Shown piece by piece: positions 17,164-33,994 of a stretch of DNA of 64,000 nt. Position numbers and translations under genes: made by a program. Under the pieces are notes generated by a model. The model ran no database searches, had not been told where the DNA came from, and was given only the letters and a program-made list of their open reading frames with translations. The stretch lies in assembly GCA_977020255.1 (NCBI GenBank), contig CDROCS010000506.1:3348001-3412000 (forward strand), read 5' to 3'. Each line of letters starts with the position of its first letter. Position 1 is the stretch's first letter. This stretch comes from Obrimoposthia wandeli (lineage: Eukaryota).

Positions 17164-18099
17164 TTACTTATGATTGAGCTGTAATTGTGTTTGAATTACA
17201 TCTGATATTAAGTCGTGAAGCCAGTTGAATAGGGCACTATTACGGTGTCTGGTATGGCAATAACTGTAAACGTCAATATAGAAAGCTTCACCTTGTATTT
17301 CTACATCGAGCGCGCGCAGGTTGGGATATTGCTGAATAGGGAAAAGATTAGAGTGGGGCAGGTACATGTCGGTATGTTGAATAATATCCAGTAATACCAT
17401 GATGAATTCAGAGCGAAAGCCGATTTTATATTCCAGACCGTGGGCTTTCATCGTCTCTGCAGCTAAGCTAAAACTCTCATTCCAACCGGGCGATATCATC
17501 GACGCAATTTCATAACCCGCATAATCATCTGGAGTAGTCAGTGAGTGCTTAATAGGATGAGATTCTCTGACCAGCACTTGGCCGCGTAAGGCTGCTAATT
17601 GCTTGCCATAAACTTCTGCCGGTGCGGGAATGTCATAATTAATGCCAAGGTATACATCGTCTTTTTGAATATCTTCAAGCGTAGAGCGTGACCAACTCAC
17701 CAATTCAATACTGGCATTGGGCGCTGATGCTTTAAGTGCTTGATAAAGCGAACCTGACAGACATGACAATACGATGGGAGATAGCGCTATTCTTAGTGAT
17801 GTATCGAGTGTTGCAGGATCAAAGTGTAAGCTGTGATTAATGCTGTTTGCTAAGCCATTTAAATGCGGTGCGATGGACGTCGCGAGGGTCTCTGAAAATG
17901 GCGTTGCTTTGAGTCCTGTTGGTACTTTAACAAACAGTTCATCATCAAAGTGATGGCGTAATTTAGTTAATGACTGACTAATCGCAGGCTGAGACACAAA
18001 CAATCGCTCAGATGCCTTTCTCATGTTGAGTTCTTGAGAAAGGATCAGAAAGACCTTTAATAAATTCAGATCTAATGTGTTATAGAGATCTTTTTTCAT
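17164..18099 (-). CDS. LysR family regulator
   Basis: 'LDLNLLKVF..ELNMRKASERLFVSQPAISQSLTKLR..F.DELFV'. Confidence 0.92.
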   Translation of the reverse strand: MKKDLYNTLDLNLLKVFLILSQELNMRKASERLFVSQPAISQSLTKLRHHFDDELFVKVPTGLKATPFSETLATSIAPHLNGLANSINHSLHFDPATLDTSLRIALSPIVLSCLSGSLYQALKASAPNASIELVSWSRSTLEDIQKDDVYLGINYDIPAPAEVYGKQLAALRGQVLVRESHPIKHSLTTPDDYAGYEIASMISPGWNESFSLAAETMKAHGLEYKIGFRSEFIMVLLDIIQHTDMYLPHSNLFPIQQYPNLRALDVEIQGEAFYIDVYSYCHTRHRNSALFNWLHDLISDVIQTQLQLNHK

Positions 18100-18303
18100 G
18101 CCTGTCTTGCCGCTAAAAAGGGAATGGTTTCCAGTCTAATCAAATTTGTATTAATAAGACAGTTATTAAGTGGATACTAGAAGGTATATTAAGTAAGAAG
18201 ATTAGAGGCAATGTAAGGACCGACCATCAAATGAACGGTCCTTAGTCGTTCGCTTACTGCAAAACATTACAATGGTTAATGAATGCCAGTGTTAAACGTA
18301 TAA

Positions 18304-19512
18304 TTAGTTAAGAAAACGGATCACATTCGGATTGAGTGTTGTTAATAATCGACTGCCAACTTGGGTATTATCTATCGTATCAATAATATCAACTCCAGGT
18401 GTAGCTGGGTTAATCATGCTAAGCCATAGAAATCCTTTTTTATCTAGGCCGAGGTAATTAATATGCTCATTACCTGTTCCTGCAACTTCGCTATTAATAA
18501 TGTCCCCTGTGGTTGGGTTGAATTCATAGAGTGTTGAGATCTCACCATATACAGGATAATAAGTTACTTCACCTGCATAAAAGTAACCTTTTTCTGCGGA
18601 TAGGATAACAGTCGCGTTGATTAGTTTACTGGTATTGTTTTCAATCTCTGCTGCCGTGAGTAGCGTTTTTAACGAAAAATCCGTTGGATTAATAACTTCT
18701 ATTGTACTCTTTGTTAATTGTTGTGGACCACCATAAGCATATATGTCGTGACTAGTGACATAAACGTTGCCATCAGGGCTTGTTGTTAGGCTGTTGCCGA
18801 GAGGATTTAACCCTTGTAGTAAGATCCCTTTGAGATTATCGCCTTGCACTGAATTAGTTTCAATCTCTTCATTTGTCACTGTATCAAAAACGGCAACATA
18901 AGCAGGATTAGCAGTAAAGTAATCAGATAAACGTTGCATGGTTATAAATAGTTTTCCCTGGCTGATAACGGCTGCAGCGGGACTCGGAGTACTGCTATTA
19001 TCAACGGGTATATAGGCGGATAGATCTATTTCGCCAATCTTAAAGCTAGCTGCATCTTCAGCATTTGGATTCACAATCCACACTTTAGCTGAACCATAAC
19101 GAATTAAATAAGCTTTGTTATCATTGGCAAAGACCAGGTTGTAAGGGTTACGACTAATAGAATCATTGCTGTCTTGAGTGGTAAATGACCAAGCAGTATT
19201 TTCATAATCTTGAGCAGCGTACTTATCTATAGTATCAATACCATAACGACCAATATGATAGATGTCGCCATTATTGGTTGTTAGAGTGTAATCAGACTTT
19301 GTTTTTCCGTAAAAGGGGCTGCTCACTTGCTGGCTAACGGGATCTAAGAACAGTACTTCAGAGCTTATATAACTCGGATCTACAGTCTGTACCACGGCGG
19401 ATGCAGCAGGTGTATGAATAAGTGGATTATCATCGGTATCACACCCTGACAGCAATGTAACACTGGCGACAATGGTAAGGGTGAGTAAGTGTTTTTTCAT
19501 TATAGTTAGCAT
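18304..19512 (-). CDS. Beta-propeller lipoprotein, YncE/BtuG-like
   Basis: Lipobox LSGC-DTDD; repeated blades such as 'NPYNLVFANDNKAYLIRYGSAKVWIVNP'; ATG abuts the TBDR stop (TAAATG). Confidence 0.7.
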   Translation of the reverse strand: MLTIMKKHLLTLTIVASVTLLSGCDTDDNPLIHTPAASAVVQTVDPSYISSEVLFLDPVSQQVSSPFYGKTKSDYTLTTNNGDIYHIGRYGIDTIDKYAAQDYENTAWSFTTQDSNDSISRNPYNLVFANDNKAYLIRYGSAKVWIVNPNAEDAASFKIGEIDLSAYIPVDNSSTPSPAAAVISQGKLFITMQRLSDYFTANPAYVAVFDTVTNEEIETNSVQGDNLKGILLQGLNPLGNSLTTSPDGNVYVTSHDIYAYGGPQQLTKSTIEVINPTDFSLKTLLTAAEIENNTSKLINATVILSAEKGYFYAGEVTYYPVYGEISTLYEFNPTTGDIINSEVAGTGNEHINYLGLDKKGFLWLSMINPATPGVDIIDTIDNTQVGSRLLTTLNPNVIRFLN

Positions 19513-21567
19513 TTATATTTCCTTTATTGCTATTTTAAATTGAATGTTGCGACCTTCTGCGGGTCTGTTGGCAAGATCTTGGTATCCATCATCAAATAGA
19601 TTGTTAATCGCTAAGTTGGCGGTAAATGTTCCCTGTTGCCAGCTAAGTTGTAAGTCTGTGGTAAAGCGATTTGCTGGGTTTTCAGCGTTACTGCCTGTAC
19701 TATTGAAAATATTGGCGCGATTAAAATAAAGCTCATTATCGATATTACTGTTGAGATTAACCCGCCAGCTTTCAGTGATGAAATAACGTATTGCCGCGCT
19801 ATACTGCTGATGATAAATACCGGGTAAGCGTTTGTTGTTATAGGCTACATATTCTGATTGGGTATTACTGTCGATAAGGTTTGCTTGTAGCACCAATGAC
19901 AGTGCGGTATTCACTTGGTAGTTAGCTTGTAACTCGAGGCCGGTTAGCTCTGCACTACTGACATTTCCGTAACTCCCCACGCTGCTTGAATTGAAAATAG
20001 CGACAATAGAATTGGTTAATTGTTGCTGATAGATAGTCCCTGTAAGAGATAAATTAGCGTAATTAACTGTGCTGCCTAGTGACAAGGTTTCTGCCTGTTC
20101 AGGTTGTAGACTGGGATTGCCTTTGAAGCTACCGCGATCGCCAAACATTTCAAATAAAGTAGGGGTACGTACACCTTTACTCCAGTTTATAAATGCCGAA
20201 AAATCAATGGTTTTTCCATTTATCGTGTTGAATTTATTGGGTTGATAAGTAATGCCGAATTCTTGGGTATCATAATCTTGAGTCGCCACATATTCACTCC
20301 CATTTTGATTTAATACTGAGTTAGTATTTTCTTCCTGTGATTGGCTGATTAATACATAAGGAATAAGTGCTAATTCAGCTATTGGCCATTCTAGTCGTGA
20401 GCCATAGTTAAGCTGTTGTTGACTGGCACTAACATCACAGCTGTTGTTACCTGTACACGGCGTCGCTTGACCTTTGTAGGTTGTTGTTGATTCAAATGTT
20501 TGCTGGTTGAAGTTGATGAATGGTGTTATGACTAAGTCGCCAGCATTCAATATCGGTTTAATACCTGCAAAGTTTTTTACGCTTTGATAGTTTCCGCGTT
20601 TTTTTGTGTCGCCGGTCGGTTGTTCTAAATAGATCTCATCAGTTATTTGCGTGTAGGCTTCAAACTCAATTTGTTCTAACCAAGCTTGTGATGATTGCCA
20701 GTTATGCAAATAACCGAATCGCCAACTATCACTGCTGATTTCACTGCTATTTTCAGGTGAGTTATTTTGGTAATTAGCCAGCTCTTTGCGCTGCTCGGTA
20801 TATTGCATATTAAAGCGCAGTAAATGCTGCCCAAGATATACTTCACTGTTGAGATGTAAGGCATTTTTTTCATAAGCATTATTGGCGAGATTTTCTTCTG
20901 TGGAAATAGAAGGATTTGTAAAATTCTGCGGCACTTGATAACGGTAGTTATTCTCACTCTGTACATGAGTGACCCCTGCGGCGAAACTACTATTGGCGAA
21001 CACTTTATTTGCCATTAAGTTCGCTTCGCGAAAACCAAATGAACCTGTCGCCAGGCTTATACGAGCGTTATCTTGTTGCGGGTTGTAAGTATTAATACGG
21101 ATAACGCCACCAATCGGCGTTGAACCTGTGCCGAGAGACTGACTTTTACTGATCTCAATGCTATCGATTTGTTCTGTCGGTAACTTATTAATATCAAAAC
21201 CGCCGAACTGACTGTCATTGATAAGCTGACCATCGATATACAATTGAACTTGTTTGCTACTTGAACCGCGGATAGATACGGAAGCTGGATTCCCTAGACC
21301 ACTTATCTTACGGATCTGAATACCGTTTACTTTTTGTAGTAGATCGCCGAGTGTTTGGGAAGAATGAATAAAGTCTTCACGATGCAATATCTGATAATTT
21401 GGAGTATCAAGGGCATTGATAACTGTGTCTTGAGTCGCAGTAACGACTGTTGTCTCAATGCCGTTTGGAAATGAACTTTTTTCTGTCGTATTCGCTGTTT
21501 GTGCGAAAGAAATTTGCAGTGGTAAAAAGCACAGCAAAAACAGAGGTGTTTTTTGTTGAAATAGCAT
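19513..21567 (-). CDS. btuB: TonB-dependent receptor, probable cobalamin transporter (BtuB-like)
   Basis: TonB box ETTVVTA, plug 'SVSIRGSSSKQVQLYIDG', barrel with 'NNLFD.GYQ'; preceded by a cobalamin riboswitch; ATG 21567 with GGGGA SD. Confidence 0.88.
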   Translation of the reverse strand: MLFQQKTPLFLLCFLPLQISFAQTANTTEKSSFPNGIETTVVTATQDTVINALDTPNYQILHREDFIHSSQTLGDLLQKVNGIQIRKISGLGNPASVSIRGSSSKQVQLYIDGQLINDSQFGGFDINKLPTEQIDSIEISKSQSLGTGSTPIGGVIRINTYNPQQDNARISLATGSFGFREANLMANKVFANSSFAAGVTHVQSENNYRYQVPQNFTNPSISTEENLANNAYEKNALHLNSEVYLGQHLLRFNMQYTEQRKELANYQNNSPENSSEISSDSWRFGYLHNWQSSQAWLEQIEFEAYTQITDEIYLEQPTGDTKKRGNYQSVKNFAGIKPILNAGDLVITPFINFNQQTFESTTTYKGQATPCTGNNSCDVSASQQQLNYGSRLEWPIAELALIPYVLISQSQEENTNSVLNQNGSEYVATQDYDTQEFGITYQPNKFNTINGKTIDFSAFINWSKGVRTPTLFEMFGDRGSFKGNPSLQPEQAETLSLGSTVNYANLSLTGTIYQQQLTNSIVAIFNSSSVGSYGNVSSAELTGLELQANYQVNTALSLVLQANLIDSNTQSEYVAYNNKRLPGIYHQQYSAAIRYFITESWRVNLNSNIDNELYFNRANIFNSTGSNAENPANRFTTDLQLSWQQGTFTANLAINNLFDDGYQDLANRPAEGRNIQFKIAIKEI

Positions 21568-21659
21568 GGGTTCCCCAATGATTTTGGGGATGGCAGAATA
21601 CAAAAAATACCGTCAGCGTGTTCATTGTCAAAAGGACTAAACAGAATAGGATTTTTCTA

Positions 21660-21810
21660 TTCCGCTATCGCCCTCCGCAATACGGTAATATTTCAATAGG
21701 CCGGTATCGGGCTTTCAACATGTTGTTGATTACCGTTGCGGGGGCAGCGTTGGTTTCACACCAAACTTCCCGTTTAACTCAATCCTTAATTACTTGATAA
21801 CAAGCTATTT
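21660..21810 (-). ncRNA. Cobalamin riboswitch, short (class II-like) form
   Basis: Minus strand: TTAAACGGGAAGTTTGGTGTGAAACCAACGCTGCCCCCGCAACGGTAA-short hairpin-AAGCCCGATACCGGCC; P1 AATAG/CTATT; downstream hairpin with GGAGG loop complementary to the CCCCC loop. Confidence 0.92.
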
Positions 21811-21912
21811 AATAGTGAGCACCTACTGTAAGTTGCGGCACTCTAATGATTGTTGAGTGTAAAATCAACGACATTAACGAATATTGAAGGCTATTGGATA
21901 AGTATTGTACGT

Positions 21913-22869
21913 TTAATCAACCATTATGGTACGACTAAGTACATTATTGAGTTTATCTTCGATTACTTTTTTAACAATCTCAGCGCTAAATTTATATAAC
22001 GGGACGTGGTGGTTTTTTTCAAGATAATAGAATGCATGATTGATTTTGTTCGGCAGCTTGTCATTCAGCCATTGTGGTTGGATGCATACCATGTCGTCAT
22101 CACAAACTGATGCGGATAATGTTTCTGTGAGTGCCAGAATATCAGAATGTTTGGCCAAGCAGTTAAGCACGGACATACTTGCTGAACGATATTTTAAATC
22201 GAATGACTTAAAATCACGAGACTGGAATAAGGATTCACTTTCAAGGGTATCAGGTAATAGACAGCCGCCCAGTGGATATTGATTAAATTCGGCTTGTTGC
22301 ATACCGCCTGTAACCCAAGGGTGATCTTTTCGAGCCACTACCATACCTTGGCTTTGGGTTAATGGAATACAGCGTATCGATTTTGGTGTGCTGATTGGAT
22401 CGAAATTCATCGCCATATGCACACGGCCCTCAATCATGTCTTTCATGGTGTTCTCTGTCCACGTAGTGACGTTTATTTTGGCATTAGGCAAAGATTCAAA
22501 CATGATTGAAGTAGTGAATTCGGTAGCAAAACTTTCTAGAAATACACTTGATACCGCTACCGTAAGCTCACCATGAAAATGCTCTGGTTCAAAATAACTT
22601 ACCGGTAATAATAAATCGTCAATCGCCTGAATATTTTCGCTTAAGCCTTCACTGATTAGGATCGCGCGTTGTGTTGGTGCTAATCCGTTGTTGGCTGAAT
22701 AAAATAAACGGTCACCAGTGAACGTGCGTAATTTGGCTAATGTTTGGCTGACAGCTGATTGCGTGACGCCTAATTTTTTCGCTGCAACAGTGGTGCTTTT
22801 AGCCTGATAAATAGCATTAAATATGCGCAGGTAATTGAGGTTTATTTTTTCATTATAAGTTTTATGCAT
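21913..22869 (-). CDS. LysR family regulator
   Basis: 'NLNYLRIF.AIYQ.KSTTVAAKKLGVTQSAVSQTLAKLR'. Confidence 0.9.
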   Translation of the reverse strand: MHKTYNEKINLNYLRIFNAIYQAKSTTVAAKKLGVTQSAVSQTLAKLRTFTGDRLFYSANNGLAPTQRAILISEGLSENIQAIDDLLLPVSYFEPEHFHGELTVAVSSVFLESFATEFTTSIMFESLPNAKINVTTWTENTMKDMIEGRVHMAMNFDPISTPKSIRCIPLTQSQGMVVARKDHPWVTGGMQQAEFNQYPLGGCLLPDTLESESLFQSRDFKSFDLKYRSASMSVLNCLAKHSDILALTETLSASVCDDDMVCIQPQWLNDKLPNKINHAFYYLEKNHHVPLYKFSAEIVKKVIEDKLNNVLSRTIMVD

Positions 22870-32474: not shown

Positions 32475-33800
32475 TTATGAAAGTGCTAAATAAACAATAA
32501 ATAGTAGTGCTAGTGAGTAAATAATCGGATGTACTTTTTTGCCATCACCTTGCACTAACATTACGAAACAGTAGCTGATGAAACCCATTGCCATACCGTT
32601 GGCTGGCGAGAAGGTTAACAAGCTAAATACCATGATAAAGAATACTGGAATTGCAGATTCTTTTTTGTCCCAGTTAATCATCGCTAAGTTCTTAATCATG
32701 TAGATACCGATTACAACTAGTGCAGGTGCAACAATCGCCGTGGTAAAGATTGAGAACACAGGGAACAAGAACATAGAGATTAAGAACAGCGCCGCAACCG
32801 TGATTGCACTGATACCTGTTTTTGCACCCAATGATGAGGCAACCGCAGATTCAGAATAAGCTGTAATTGATGTAGTTCCTAATACCGTACCTATGATAGT
32901 ACCACCTGAATCGGCAATTAATGCAGATTTAGCGTTTGGCACTTTACCGTCTTTACCGATAATACCGGCATCACGTCCGACACCAACAATAGTACTTAGG
33001 CCATCGAAGAAATCGACAATAAAGAAGATAATAACCAAGAAGATTAAGTCACTCATTTTTGGCATTGTCAGTTGCGACAAGTCAAAGATAGCACCAAAGG
33101 TAGGCGCTAAGCTTGGCGGCATAGAGAATACTTCAGTTGGAATGGTTATCAAGTTACTACCAAGGAAGTGGTCGCTCAAAAGACTTAAAATAATAGATGA
33201 GATAAACGAAATAACAGTCGCTAGTTTCATATCGCGAACTAAACAACCAATAGCAATAAAGATACTGACCAGTGCAATGAACACTTTCGGGTCGTACACA
33301 TCGCCCATGCTCACCAGAATAAACGGGTTGCTAACGATGATACCGGCATTTTTAAGGCCTAAAAATGAAACGAACAAGCCCAGACCAACAGCAATACCGA
33401 GTTTTAAATCTTCAGGTATGGCTTCAATCATCACCTTACGAGCAGGTGTTAAGCTTAAAATTAAATACAGACAACCAGAAAGGAAAATAGCAAATAGTGC
33501 TTCATGCCAAAGTAACGAGATACCGCCGCCTAATAAGATAGCCTTAAAAAAGCCATTCATCGACATGCCGGGGGCTAACATAATAGGGTATTTAGAAAAC
33601 GCACCCATAATGAATGTAGCAATCGCTGCAGACAGTGCGGTAGCTGTAAATACTGAGCCTTTGTCTATCCCTTCGATGCTTCCTAAAATTGCCGGATTCA
33701 CTGCTAAGATATAACTCATCGCTAAAAAGGTAATTAAACCCGCGTAGATTTCATTTTTTAGAGTTGCGCCACGCGCAGACAGGAGGAAGTACTTGTCCAT
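32475..33800 (-). CDS. NCS2 purine permease (AzgA/PbuG type)
   Basis: 'EIYAGLITFLAMSYILAVNPAIL', 'LAPGMSMN.FF', 'GTTSITAYSES'; ATG 33800 with GGATG upstream. Confidence 0.92.
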   Translation of the reverse strand: MDKYFLLSARGATLKNEIYAGLITFLAMSYILAVNPAILGSIEGIDKGSVFTATALSAAIATFIMGAFSKYPIMLAPGMSMNGFFKAILLGGGISLLWHEALFAIFLSGCLYLILSLTPARKVMIEAIPEDLKLGIAVGLGLFVSFLGLKNAGIIVSNPFILVSMGDVYDPKVFIALVSIFIAIGCLVRDMKLATVISFISSIILSLLSDHFLGSNLITIPTEVFSMPPSLAPTFGAIFDLSQLTMPKMSDLIFLVIIFFIVDFFDGLSTIVGVGRDAGIIGKDGKVPNAKSALIADSGGTIIGTVLGTTSITAYSESAVASSLGAKTGISAITVAALFLISMFLFPVFSIFTTAIVAPALVVIGIYMIKNLAMINWDKKESAIPVFFIMVFSLLTFSPANGMAMGFISYCFVMLVQGDGKKVHPIIYSLALLFIVYLALS

Positions 33801-33907
33801 TAATAAACATCCATTACTATTAAGTTGGTTGATTTTAAATGACAATATTCCGAAGTATAACCTTGGGTAGGGGAACTATACCTAAAAAAGGTACAATTAT
33901 CCTGCTT

Positions 33908-33976
33908 CATTGTAGGTCTGAAATTTACGGTTTCAGAGTAGAGACTTAAGGCCCATATTGCCAAAATTATACAACG
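33908..33976 (-). ncRNA. Purine riboswitch, guanine type (C74) with atypical features
   Basis: CGUUGUA-UAA-UUUUGGC-AAUAUGG-GCCUUAA-GUCUCUAC-UCUGAAA-CCGUAAA-UUUCAGA-CC-UACAAUG; L2 GG and L3 CC kissing bases present; upstream of permease-xpt. Confidence 0.88.
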
Positions 33977-33994
33977 TCACATTGCTTGCGGGGC

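Follow-up and report, generated by a model that had tools for sequence, protein, structure and literature searches.

A cobalamin-riboswitch-controlled receptor and a BtuG-like propeller lipoprotein form a candidate corrinoid capture pair in Moritella

Vitamin B12 (cobalamin) is scarce in seawater, at picomolar concentrations, and has to be scavenged by the majority of marine microbes and algae. In the textbook proteobacterial route the receptor BtuB works alone at the outer membrane and is followed by BtuFCD. From 2018 up to a review of 2026, publications have regarded high-affinity capture at the cell surface by BtuG as an adaptive trait of gut Bacteroidota. A locus on contig CDROCS010000506.1 (assembly GCA_977020255.1, filed under Obrimoposthia wandeli) raises the question of whether a pair of the BtuB-BtuG type also operates in marine Proteobacteria: a cobalamin riboswitch is followed there by the gene of a TonB-dependent receptor and by that of a lipoprotein with a beta-propeller fold. 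The window, meaning the whole stretch of 64,000 nucleotides (nt) that was analysed, covers positions 3,348,001 to 3,412,000 of the contig. Judging from the sequence of its TrkH, which shares 96% identity with the TrkH of Moritella sp. JT01 and 86-87% with those of Shewanella and Vibrio, the source bacterium is a Moritella (Gammaproteobacteria).

The answer reached here has two parts of unequal strength. That the pair serves to acquire corrinoids under B12 regulation is strongly supported, with a probability of about 0.9, and one of about 0.6 is given to the more specific reading that the propeller works like BtuG, as the outward-facing, corrinoid-binding partner of the receptor in a capture and uptake pair of the BtuBG type. 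Surface exposure, contact with the receptor as a lid, corrinoid binding and the export route are predicted features of this second part.

The connection with B12 starts in the leader. As the preliminary description of the locus had proposed, a cobalamin riboswitch lies 5' of the receptor gene: the Rfam model RF00174 matches over its full span with 52.8 bits (gathering score 31.5, E 2.6e-10), on the same strand and 117 nt 5' of the receptor ATG (Table 1). The aptamer is only 136 nt long, with 8 nt replacing a 62-position peripheral region of the Rfam model; it may represent the class without the peripheral extension, which could bear on the corrinoid sensed. Short cobalamin aptamers, of 120-175 nt, also occur in related loci of Alteromonadales (L006, L010, L017, L031), and aptamers of 205-230 nt in loci of Desulfobacterota and others (L037, L042, L046). 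Between aptamer and receptor gene, the minimum-free-energy structure predicted for the leader (z -2.8) contains a terminator-like hairpin, and the Shine-Dalgarno sequence GGGGA, located 5 nt before the ATG at 21567, pairs with an upstream UCCCC (21590-21572).

The TAA of the receptor gene directly abuts the ATG of the lipoprotein gene, an arrangement noted in the preliminary description and borne out by the coordinates and translations of the open reading frames (ORFs). This stop-start contact suggests that the two genes are translationally coupled. The arrangement extends well beyond Moritella. A word search returned 399 homologues of the lipoprotein, mostly from Colwellia, Psychrobium, Pseudoalteromonas, Paraglaciecola and their relatives, which carry the label 'cadherin repeat domain-containing protein' if they have a name at all. 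Species-representative genomes were scanned as well and yielded 49 loci, including some from Catenovulum, Oleiphilus, unclassified Gammaproteobacteria and Desulfobacteraceae. Receptor and propeller genes are adjacent in 47 of the 49, a degree of conservation which rules out chance adjacency; in 46 a homologous receptor gene is placed immediately upstream on the same strand, with stop abutting start in 29 of these. The gene order is reversed in L039, where the receptor lies downstream of the propeller, and in L048 the two genes converge.

A riboswitch reaching the RF00174 gathering threshold was found upstream on the same strand in 38 of the 49 loci. Among the other 11, four have no upstream sequence and the remaining seven all belong to Colwellia, in which btuD (ATP-binding cassette ATPase), btuC (FecCD), btuR (corrinoid adenosyltransferase) and btuF (Peripla_BP_2) come immediately before the pair and read in the same direction; in L002 and L007, where the contig reaches that far, btuD is itself preceded by a sub-threshold riboswitch. 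The survey of co-occurrence with cobalamin riboswitches that had been suggested earlier therefore gives a B12 link, either a riboswitch or a btuDC-btuR-btuF operon upstream, in 45 of 45 testable loci. Moreover, the first gene after a riboswitch in L039 and L048 is that of the propeller, so that its link with B12 does not depend on the receptor.

Further observations concern the make-up of these loci. The six-gene operon btuD-btuC-btuR-btuF-receptor-propeller is seen in Colwellia relatives (L001, L002, L003, L004, L007, L008, L028 and L035), with riboswitch matches before btuD that are weak or sub-threshold (31.8 bits in L003, 28.1 in L002 and, for AdoCbl-II, 28.5 in L007). The absence of btuFCD noted in the preliminary description holds for the 64-kb window, where BLAST with Colwellia BtuD, BtuC, BtuR and BtuF found no counterpart, but fails as a general trait, given that the Colwellia relatives carry btuD-btuC-btuR-btuF in the same operon. 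An ORF encoding about 446 amino acids (aa), without a Pfam match, is convergent to the propeller gene in the Colwellia loci L001:6638-7978, L003:7174-8517, L004, L007, L008 and L045; it is conserved, with 60-66% identity from locus to locus. In L048 (5602-10046, from a metagenome-assembled genome of Deltaproteobacteria) propeller and receptor are each split in two ORFs, and the propeller and the receptor have one cobalamin riboswitch apiece; frameshifts or pseudogenes are possible explanations. An apparent fusion of the propeller with BtuF (Peripla_BP_2), P0235 (L133:1290-3434, 714 aa), was rejected on account of an internal signal-peptide-like stretch, and it is probably a case of two adjacent genes merged by a missing stop codon.

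The receptor reading frame, 19513-21603 on the minus strand, extends to a TTG at 21603 and matches the Pfam families Plug (3.1e-16) and TonB_dep_Rec_b-barrel (5.4e-25). The likely true start is the ATG at 21567, which gives 684 aa, according to gene calls in metagenomic relatives of 94% identity. From this ATG the protein begins with a normal signal peptide, followed by a TonB-box-like ETTVVTA, similar to the TonB box of BtuB (DTLVVTA in E. coli BtuB). The C-terminus (19513-19548, minus strand) reads ...KIAIKEI and ends in Ile; outer-membrane barrels usually end in an aromatic residue.

Several comparisons place this receptor next to BtuB. Its best NCBIfam matches are two BtuB equivalog models (TIGR01779 and NF007926), both far under their cut-offs (88.4 bits against 599.7; 79.5 against 836), and by these scores it differs from enterobacterial BtuB in not being an equivalog. 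A profile of 23 receptors from related loci (A3), searched against PDB sequences, matched B. thetaiotaomicron BtuB1 best and over the full length (1.4e-41), then E. coli BtuB (1.8e-37), followed by XusA, BtuB3 and BtuB2 (e-34 to e-32) and Cir (e-30), with everything else at e-21 or worse; BtuBs account for 10 of the 11 top matches. The best single-sequence match of the Moritella receptor in the PDB is XusA (9gbc_A, 4.8e-15). When the structural model of the receptor (predicted local distance difference test, pLDDT, 78.5) was compared using VIA, the top scores went to E. coli BtuB and to B. thetaiotaomicron BtuB1 and BtuB3 (Z 35.6-34.8), with small margins and other receptors close behind; 574-584 residues were aligned for the Bacteroides BtuBs, compared with about 525 for E. 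coli BtuB. In length, too, and in its full-length alignment, the receptor resembles the lid-bearing BtuB1 (B. thetaiotaomicron BtuB1-3 have about 690-713 residues, E. coli BtuB 594). With a Plug domain, a 22-strand barrel, riboswitch control and B12 transporters as its closest solved relatives in both profile and structural searches, the protein is BtuB-like in the broad sense, and profile and model together indicate a BtuB-like transporter of the larger size found in the lid-bearing Bacteroides BtuBs.

The partner protein belongs to a large family without a Pfam model: of the clusters formed at 50% identity, an exhaustive profile search retrieved 1,753 at E<=0.001 and 426 at E<=1e-30, and each of the 150 matches listed is a strong member. 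The Moritella lipoprotein itself has no match in Pfam or NCBIfam. From an alignment of 40 family sequences (A1), AlphaFold2 produced a model of high confidence, with a pLDDT of 86 and a predicted template modelling score of 0.86, in which disorder is limited to the signal peptide and linker. Its 28 strands make up seven four-stranded blades, the C-terminal strand closing onto the N-terminal ones, which agrees with the propeller of about seven blades read earlier from the sequence.

The comparison of this model with BtuG structures, which had been suggested as a check, gives a consistent ranking. In a Foldseek search of the PDB, chains of BtuG1, BtuG2 and BtuG3 occupied ranks 1-15 (E 1.5e-12 to 2e-10; template modelling score 0.61-0.66 by query and 0.72-0.78 by target), and after realignment of the Foldseek list with VIA they held ranks 1-11, with Z 29.2-32.4 and root-mean-square deviations of 2.6-3.0 Å over 307-318 residues at 12-16% identity, ahead of the next fold at Z 27.6. 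An exhaustive VIA comparison with 48,161 PDB representatives, independent of Foldseek, again placed the three BtuG clusters at ranks 1-3 (Z 32.4, 32.0 and 29.9), and the next fold was a fungal lactonising enzyme (Z 27.6). Identity between the lipoprotein and BtuG amounts to 11-16%.

At the level of sequence the resemblance centres on one blade. BtuG is absent from the PDB matches of the single sequence and of the A1 profile. When 177,635 PDB sequences were searched with a profile built from 24 diverse members of the family (A2), chains of the BtuG type (YncE family/surface layer) made up nine of the top ten matches, at E 0.017-0.18 and over a single blade; all these alignments fall on family positions 123-156 and on about 97-152 of BtuG3. 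Family and BtuG share, in register, the pattern P-x4-F-x4-KAY ... IVNP. The stretch at residues 122-149, which the preliminary description had quoted as resembling BtuG blades, is exactly the one that aligns with the BtuG chains. In a single BLASTP comparison, the lipoprotein and a BtuG3-like protein aligned collinearly over 158 residues, from the signal peptide to blade 3 (E 0.002). Furthermore, an unfiltered search with a hidden Markov model of BtuG3, covering 320 proteins of the family together with 788 unrelated ORFs of these loci, retrieved 240 family proteins before the first decoy (E 1.3), and several of its alignments span two blades. Blade 3 is the most conserved blade, with 10 of the 24 nearly invariant family columns in residues 122-167. 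Invariant positions of the family include D74, N122, R138, Y139, Q193, R194, D210, N236, Y310 and W363; an attempt to assign the conserved residues to one face of the propeller by strand order was rejected, as they lie on both faces. Sequence similarity to BtuG is reciprocal, yet marginal and confined to one or two blades, and a very remote homology of the two families is probable.

Several results weigh against equating the propeller with BtuG, some of them concerning its fold and function and others its localisation. All seven-bladed propellers score high against the model (Z 23-27), so the margin of BtuG is only 2-5 Z units. Neither the lipoprotein (E<=0.1) nor 40 of its relatives (E<=1) match PF16819 (DUF5074), to which every homologue of the BtuG3-like genes from gut metagenome contigs (bacterial loci L053-L132) belongs; by the Pfam test the lipoprotein is not a DUF5074 member. 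With hhalign, the A2 profile and a narrow BtuG3 alignment (at least 76% identity, drawn from the best 120 matches of a word search) reached a probability of 38%, in a blade-shifted alignment that is out of register. No corrinoid-binding residues could be mapped on the propeller model. Expression data add nothing to the case, as the RNA runs X22-X24 contained zero reads of the Moritella host and are therefore uninformative; run X19, whose status as RNA is a guess, contained three small contigs that fall on the lipoprotein gene and the leader.

The same fold leaves room for a propeller which takes part in B12 acquisition without being a simple corrinoid binder, for example as an enzyme that remodels or releases corrinoids, or as a receptor recognising a protein or particle that carries B12. 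Lactonases and lactonising enzymes are among the propellers with a similar shape, and lactonase-type and cycloisomerase propellers reach Z 26-27.6, a little under BtuG. Moreover, the tandem family member P0142 (752 aa) combines the family propeller (residues 3-386) with a second propeller that matches Pfam Lactonase (1.5e-06), as well as DUF5074 below its cut-off (2.7e-05; 23.8 bits against 27.2), and the lack of verified corrinoid-binding residues in the Moritella propeller is also compatible with such a role. This explanation nevertheless appears improbable, as all structural and sequence measures rank BtuG chains first, the lipoprotein matches none of the enzyme families in Pfam or NCBIfam, and its strict pairing with the receptor, with stop abutting start, points to a stoichiometric partner.

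Localisation is the second point of doubt. The translation supports the lipidated Cys and the acidic residues after it that had been described: the lipobox LLSG-C24 is followed by DTDDN. A lipobox is found in 116 of 120 close homologues, in which the +2 residue is G (60), N (26), D (19) or S (9); the following residues are rich in D, S and N, and positions +2 to +6 include two or three acidic residues in 55 of the 116. The proposal that the acidic patch acts as an export signal did not hold up to the same extent, as it is not a recognised signal in Gammaproteobacteria and Asp at +2 is limited to 19 of the 116. This Asp is particular to the Moritella clade, a 78%-identical orthologue having Asn instead.

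In E. coli, Asp at +2 is a signal for inner-membrane retention (Lol avoidance). If the same were true in the Moritella clade, the protein would be held in the inner membrane, for instance as a tethered substitute for BtuF, and D-T-D-D-N after Cys24 and the lack of btuF in the window would both be in line with this. Such retention is very improbable: the +2 residue varies among close orthologues, the partner gene always encodes an outer-membrane receptor, and BtuF co-occurs with the propeller family elsewhere. Nor is the E. coli +2 rule valid in all Gammaproteobacteria, where Asp at +2 also marks pullulanase, a surface lipoprotein secreted by the type II system.

A more serious alternative places the propeller on the periplasmic side, in the inner leaflet of the outer membrane or, in non-lipidated relatives, as a soluble protein, where it would bind corrinoids, take over B12 on its exit from the receptor and deliver it to BtuF, or keep it in store in the periplasm. 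Proteobacterial lipoproteins sorted by Lol face the periplasm by default, and no Slam-like or other surface-export gene was seen beside the pair. An ordinary (type I) signal peptide, without a lipobox and hence without a lipid anchor, is found in about a quarter of the representatives of the family, chiefly those of the Desulfobacterota type, and both the B12 linkage and the fold would fit a periplasmic binder equally well. The propeller ORFs of Desulfobacterota (L037, L039, L043, L044 and L046) have no lipobox Cys and carry a C-terminal extension of about 100-130 residues without a Pfam match. We know of no periplasmic lipoprotein that partners the inner face of a TonB-dependent receptor. In addition, 76 of the 116 homologues have an N-terminal domain of about 90 residues inserted between anchor and propeller, part of which match cadherin or Big_9 in Pfam, and more distant family members carry PKD, SLH or dockerin modules, all of which are typical of extracellular proteins. 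A periplasmic role would be redundant in the Colwellia loci, where BtuF is encoded in the same operon, and the closest structural relatives of the propeller act on the outer face of BtuB (PMC10404256). A periplasm-facing propeller is accordingly considered unlikely. The outward orientation is the more likely one because of the extracellular-type modules in relatives and because BtuF already supplies a periplasmic binder.

If the propeller does work like BtuG, the following sequence of events would be expected. At high cellular cobalamin the aptamer would bind the vitamin and the leader would shut off expression through the terminator-like hairpin, the hairpin hiding the ribosome-binding site, or both. 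At low cobalamin the BtuB-like receptor and the lipoprotein would be made together, and the propeller would be tethered to the outer membrane by the lipidated Cys24 and a flexible acidic linker. Facing outward, it would bind corrinoids in its central cavity and, sitting on or next to the extracellular loops of the receptor, pass them on for import driven by TonB, in the way that BtuG serves BtuB in Bacteroides. To cross the inner membrane, the corrinoids would then rely on a BtuFCD encoded elsewhere in the Moritella genome. The proposed action of the two leader hairpins belongs to the predicted part of this scheme.

The likeness to BtuG1, BtuG2 and BtuG3 of B. thetaiotaomicron (PDB 3DSM, 8BMX, 8BLW and 8P97) thus includes the seven-bladed propeller lipoprotein as best structural match, a gene beside that of a BtuB-type receptor, cobalamin riboswitch control, acidic residues after the lipidated Cys and the KAY ... 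IVNP blade motif. In contrast to BtuG, the Moritella protein is about 40 residues longer, has no DUF5074 match and comes from Proteobacteria rather than Bacteroidota; most of its relatives add an N-terminal cadherin or immunoglobulin-like domain and some have no lipid anchor. The gene order differs as well, being propeller to receptor in a BtuG3-like locus from a gut metagenome and receptor to propeller in Moritella, and the lipoprotein export signal and machinery of Bacteroidota cannot be assumed for the Moritella protein.

Other known systems share single traits with the pair. XusA-XusB, which belongs with the non-SusD lids of Bacteroides (10.1101/2023.03.17.533168), also combines a propeller lipoprotein with a TonB-dependent transporter, but XusB is a lower structural match of the Moritella propeller (Z 25.6-26.3) and a member of DUF4374 that serves siderophore uptake, whereas the B12 riboswitch and btu context of the Moritella family point to corrinoids. 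A precedent for a lid lipoprotein and transporter of the Bacteroidota type in marine Alteromonadales is the SusC/D-like pair of Pseudoalteromonas distincta (PMC13000452). Its SusD-like lipoprotein likewise has acidic residues after the lipobox Cys, and its report used the same argument from acidic residues, also without direct proof (PMC13000452). That pair differs in its helical SusD fold and glycan substrate, and it is rare (31 of 4,681 genomes) and probably a recent transfer; the Moritella propeller family, by contrast, is large and divergent, and the Moritella operon has a GC content like that of its surroundings. BtuF is a B12-binding accessory protein of this pathway, which Colwellia relatives encode together with the pair in one operon; its fold (Peripla_BP_2) is unrelated, and it co-occurs with the propeller rather than replacing it.

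The published accounts cited here place BtuG in Bacteroidota only, in agreement with the earlier suggestion that a lid-type system is new for this lineage. BtuG homologues were stated to occur only in Bacteroidetes by Wexler et al. in 2018 (PMC6143338), BtuBG complexes were presented as a Bacteroides feature by Abellon-Ruiz et al. in 2023 (PMC10404256), and according to Price (2023) lids go with Bacteroidota, one unrelated family excepted (10.1101/2023.03.17.533168). In a review of September 2026, BtuG is recorded throughout gut Bacteroidota, and BtuJ alone for Pseudomonadota (PMC13616437). Literature searches on BtuG in marine settings, on DUF5074 and on B12, TonB and lipoproteins in Colwellia, with subscription journals outside their coverage, found no description of the propeller family.

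Table 1. Features of the riboswitch-receptor-propeller locus (positions in the 64-kb window)
Feature	Position	Strand	Basis
Cobalamin riboswitch aptamer, short form	21685..21820	-	Rfam RF00174, full model 1-189
Candidate terminator hairpin with T-rich tail, leader	21640..21666	-	Terminator consensus scan, 10 pairs; putative function
Hairpin sequestering the Shine-Dalgarno sequence, UCCCCAA:UUGGGGA	21572..21590	-	RNA fold of 21560-21700; putative regulatory use
BtuB-like TonB-dependent receptor, 684 aa	19513..21567	-	Pfam, family profile, model
402-aa lipoprotein, predicted seven-bladed beta-propeller of BtuG-like fold	18304..19512	-	Translation, AlphaFold2, Foldseek, VIA
Lipoprotein signal peptide, lipobox LLSG-C24 (Cys codon 19441-19443), D/N-rich linker DTDDN	19441..19512	-	Translation
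Propeller blade 3, residues 122-149	19066..19149	-	In register with BtuG; profile and BLASTP matches
GC-rich hairpin of 9 bp, 60 nt past the lipoprotein stop, without T-run	18214..18244	-	Direct reading of the sequence

The last hairpin of Table 1 is a possible end of the operon and is missing from the output of the terminator consensus scan. The GC content of the operon is 0.40, against 0.41 in its surroundings, and does not suggest a recent horizontal arrival. Genes of LysR-family regulators flank the B12 pair on both sides (17164-18099 and 21913-22869, both on the minus strand). The upstream one is kept in the 94%-identical metagenomic relatives; their downstream context differs, with a second TonB-dependent receptor, a DUF4154 protein and a GGDEF protein. 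Elsewhere in the window, a purine riboswitch aptamer at 33893-33994 (minus strand; 68.9 bits, gathering score 37) lies upstream of a 456-aa ORF at 32475-33845, for which no strong NCBIfam match was found.

Extended to the whole family, the BtuG-like reading would make the unnamed propellers, some 1,750 clusters, surface-exposed corrinoid-capturing lids or tethered receptors on BtuB-type transporters of marine Gammaproteobacteria and Desulfobacterota, a generalisation for and against which the chances are evenly balanced. If it is true, lid-assisted B12 piracy is not specific to Bacteroidota, Proteobacteria need a route that places the lipoprotein on the cell surface, and the BtuB-BtuG pair is either ancient or was exchanged long ago between phyla. 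A concrete question is thereby raised, namely how Proteobacteria expose surface lipoproteins. The family, so far labelled 'cadherin repeat domain-containing protein' or 'hypothetical', would gain a name and a testable function, and could provide new corrinoid-binding reagents, a use to which BtuG2 has already been put. The presence of such a pair in Moritella, Colwellia, Pseudoalteromonas, Paraglaciecola, Psychrobium, Catenovulum and sulfate-reducing Desulfobacterota would alter models of corrinoid competition in the ocean and in sediments.

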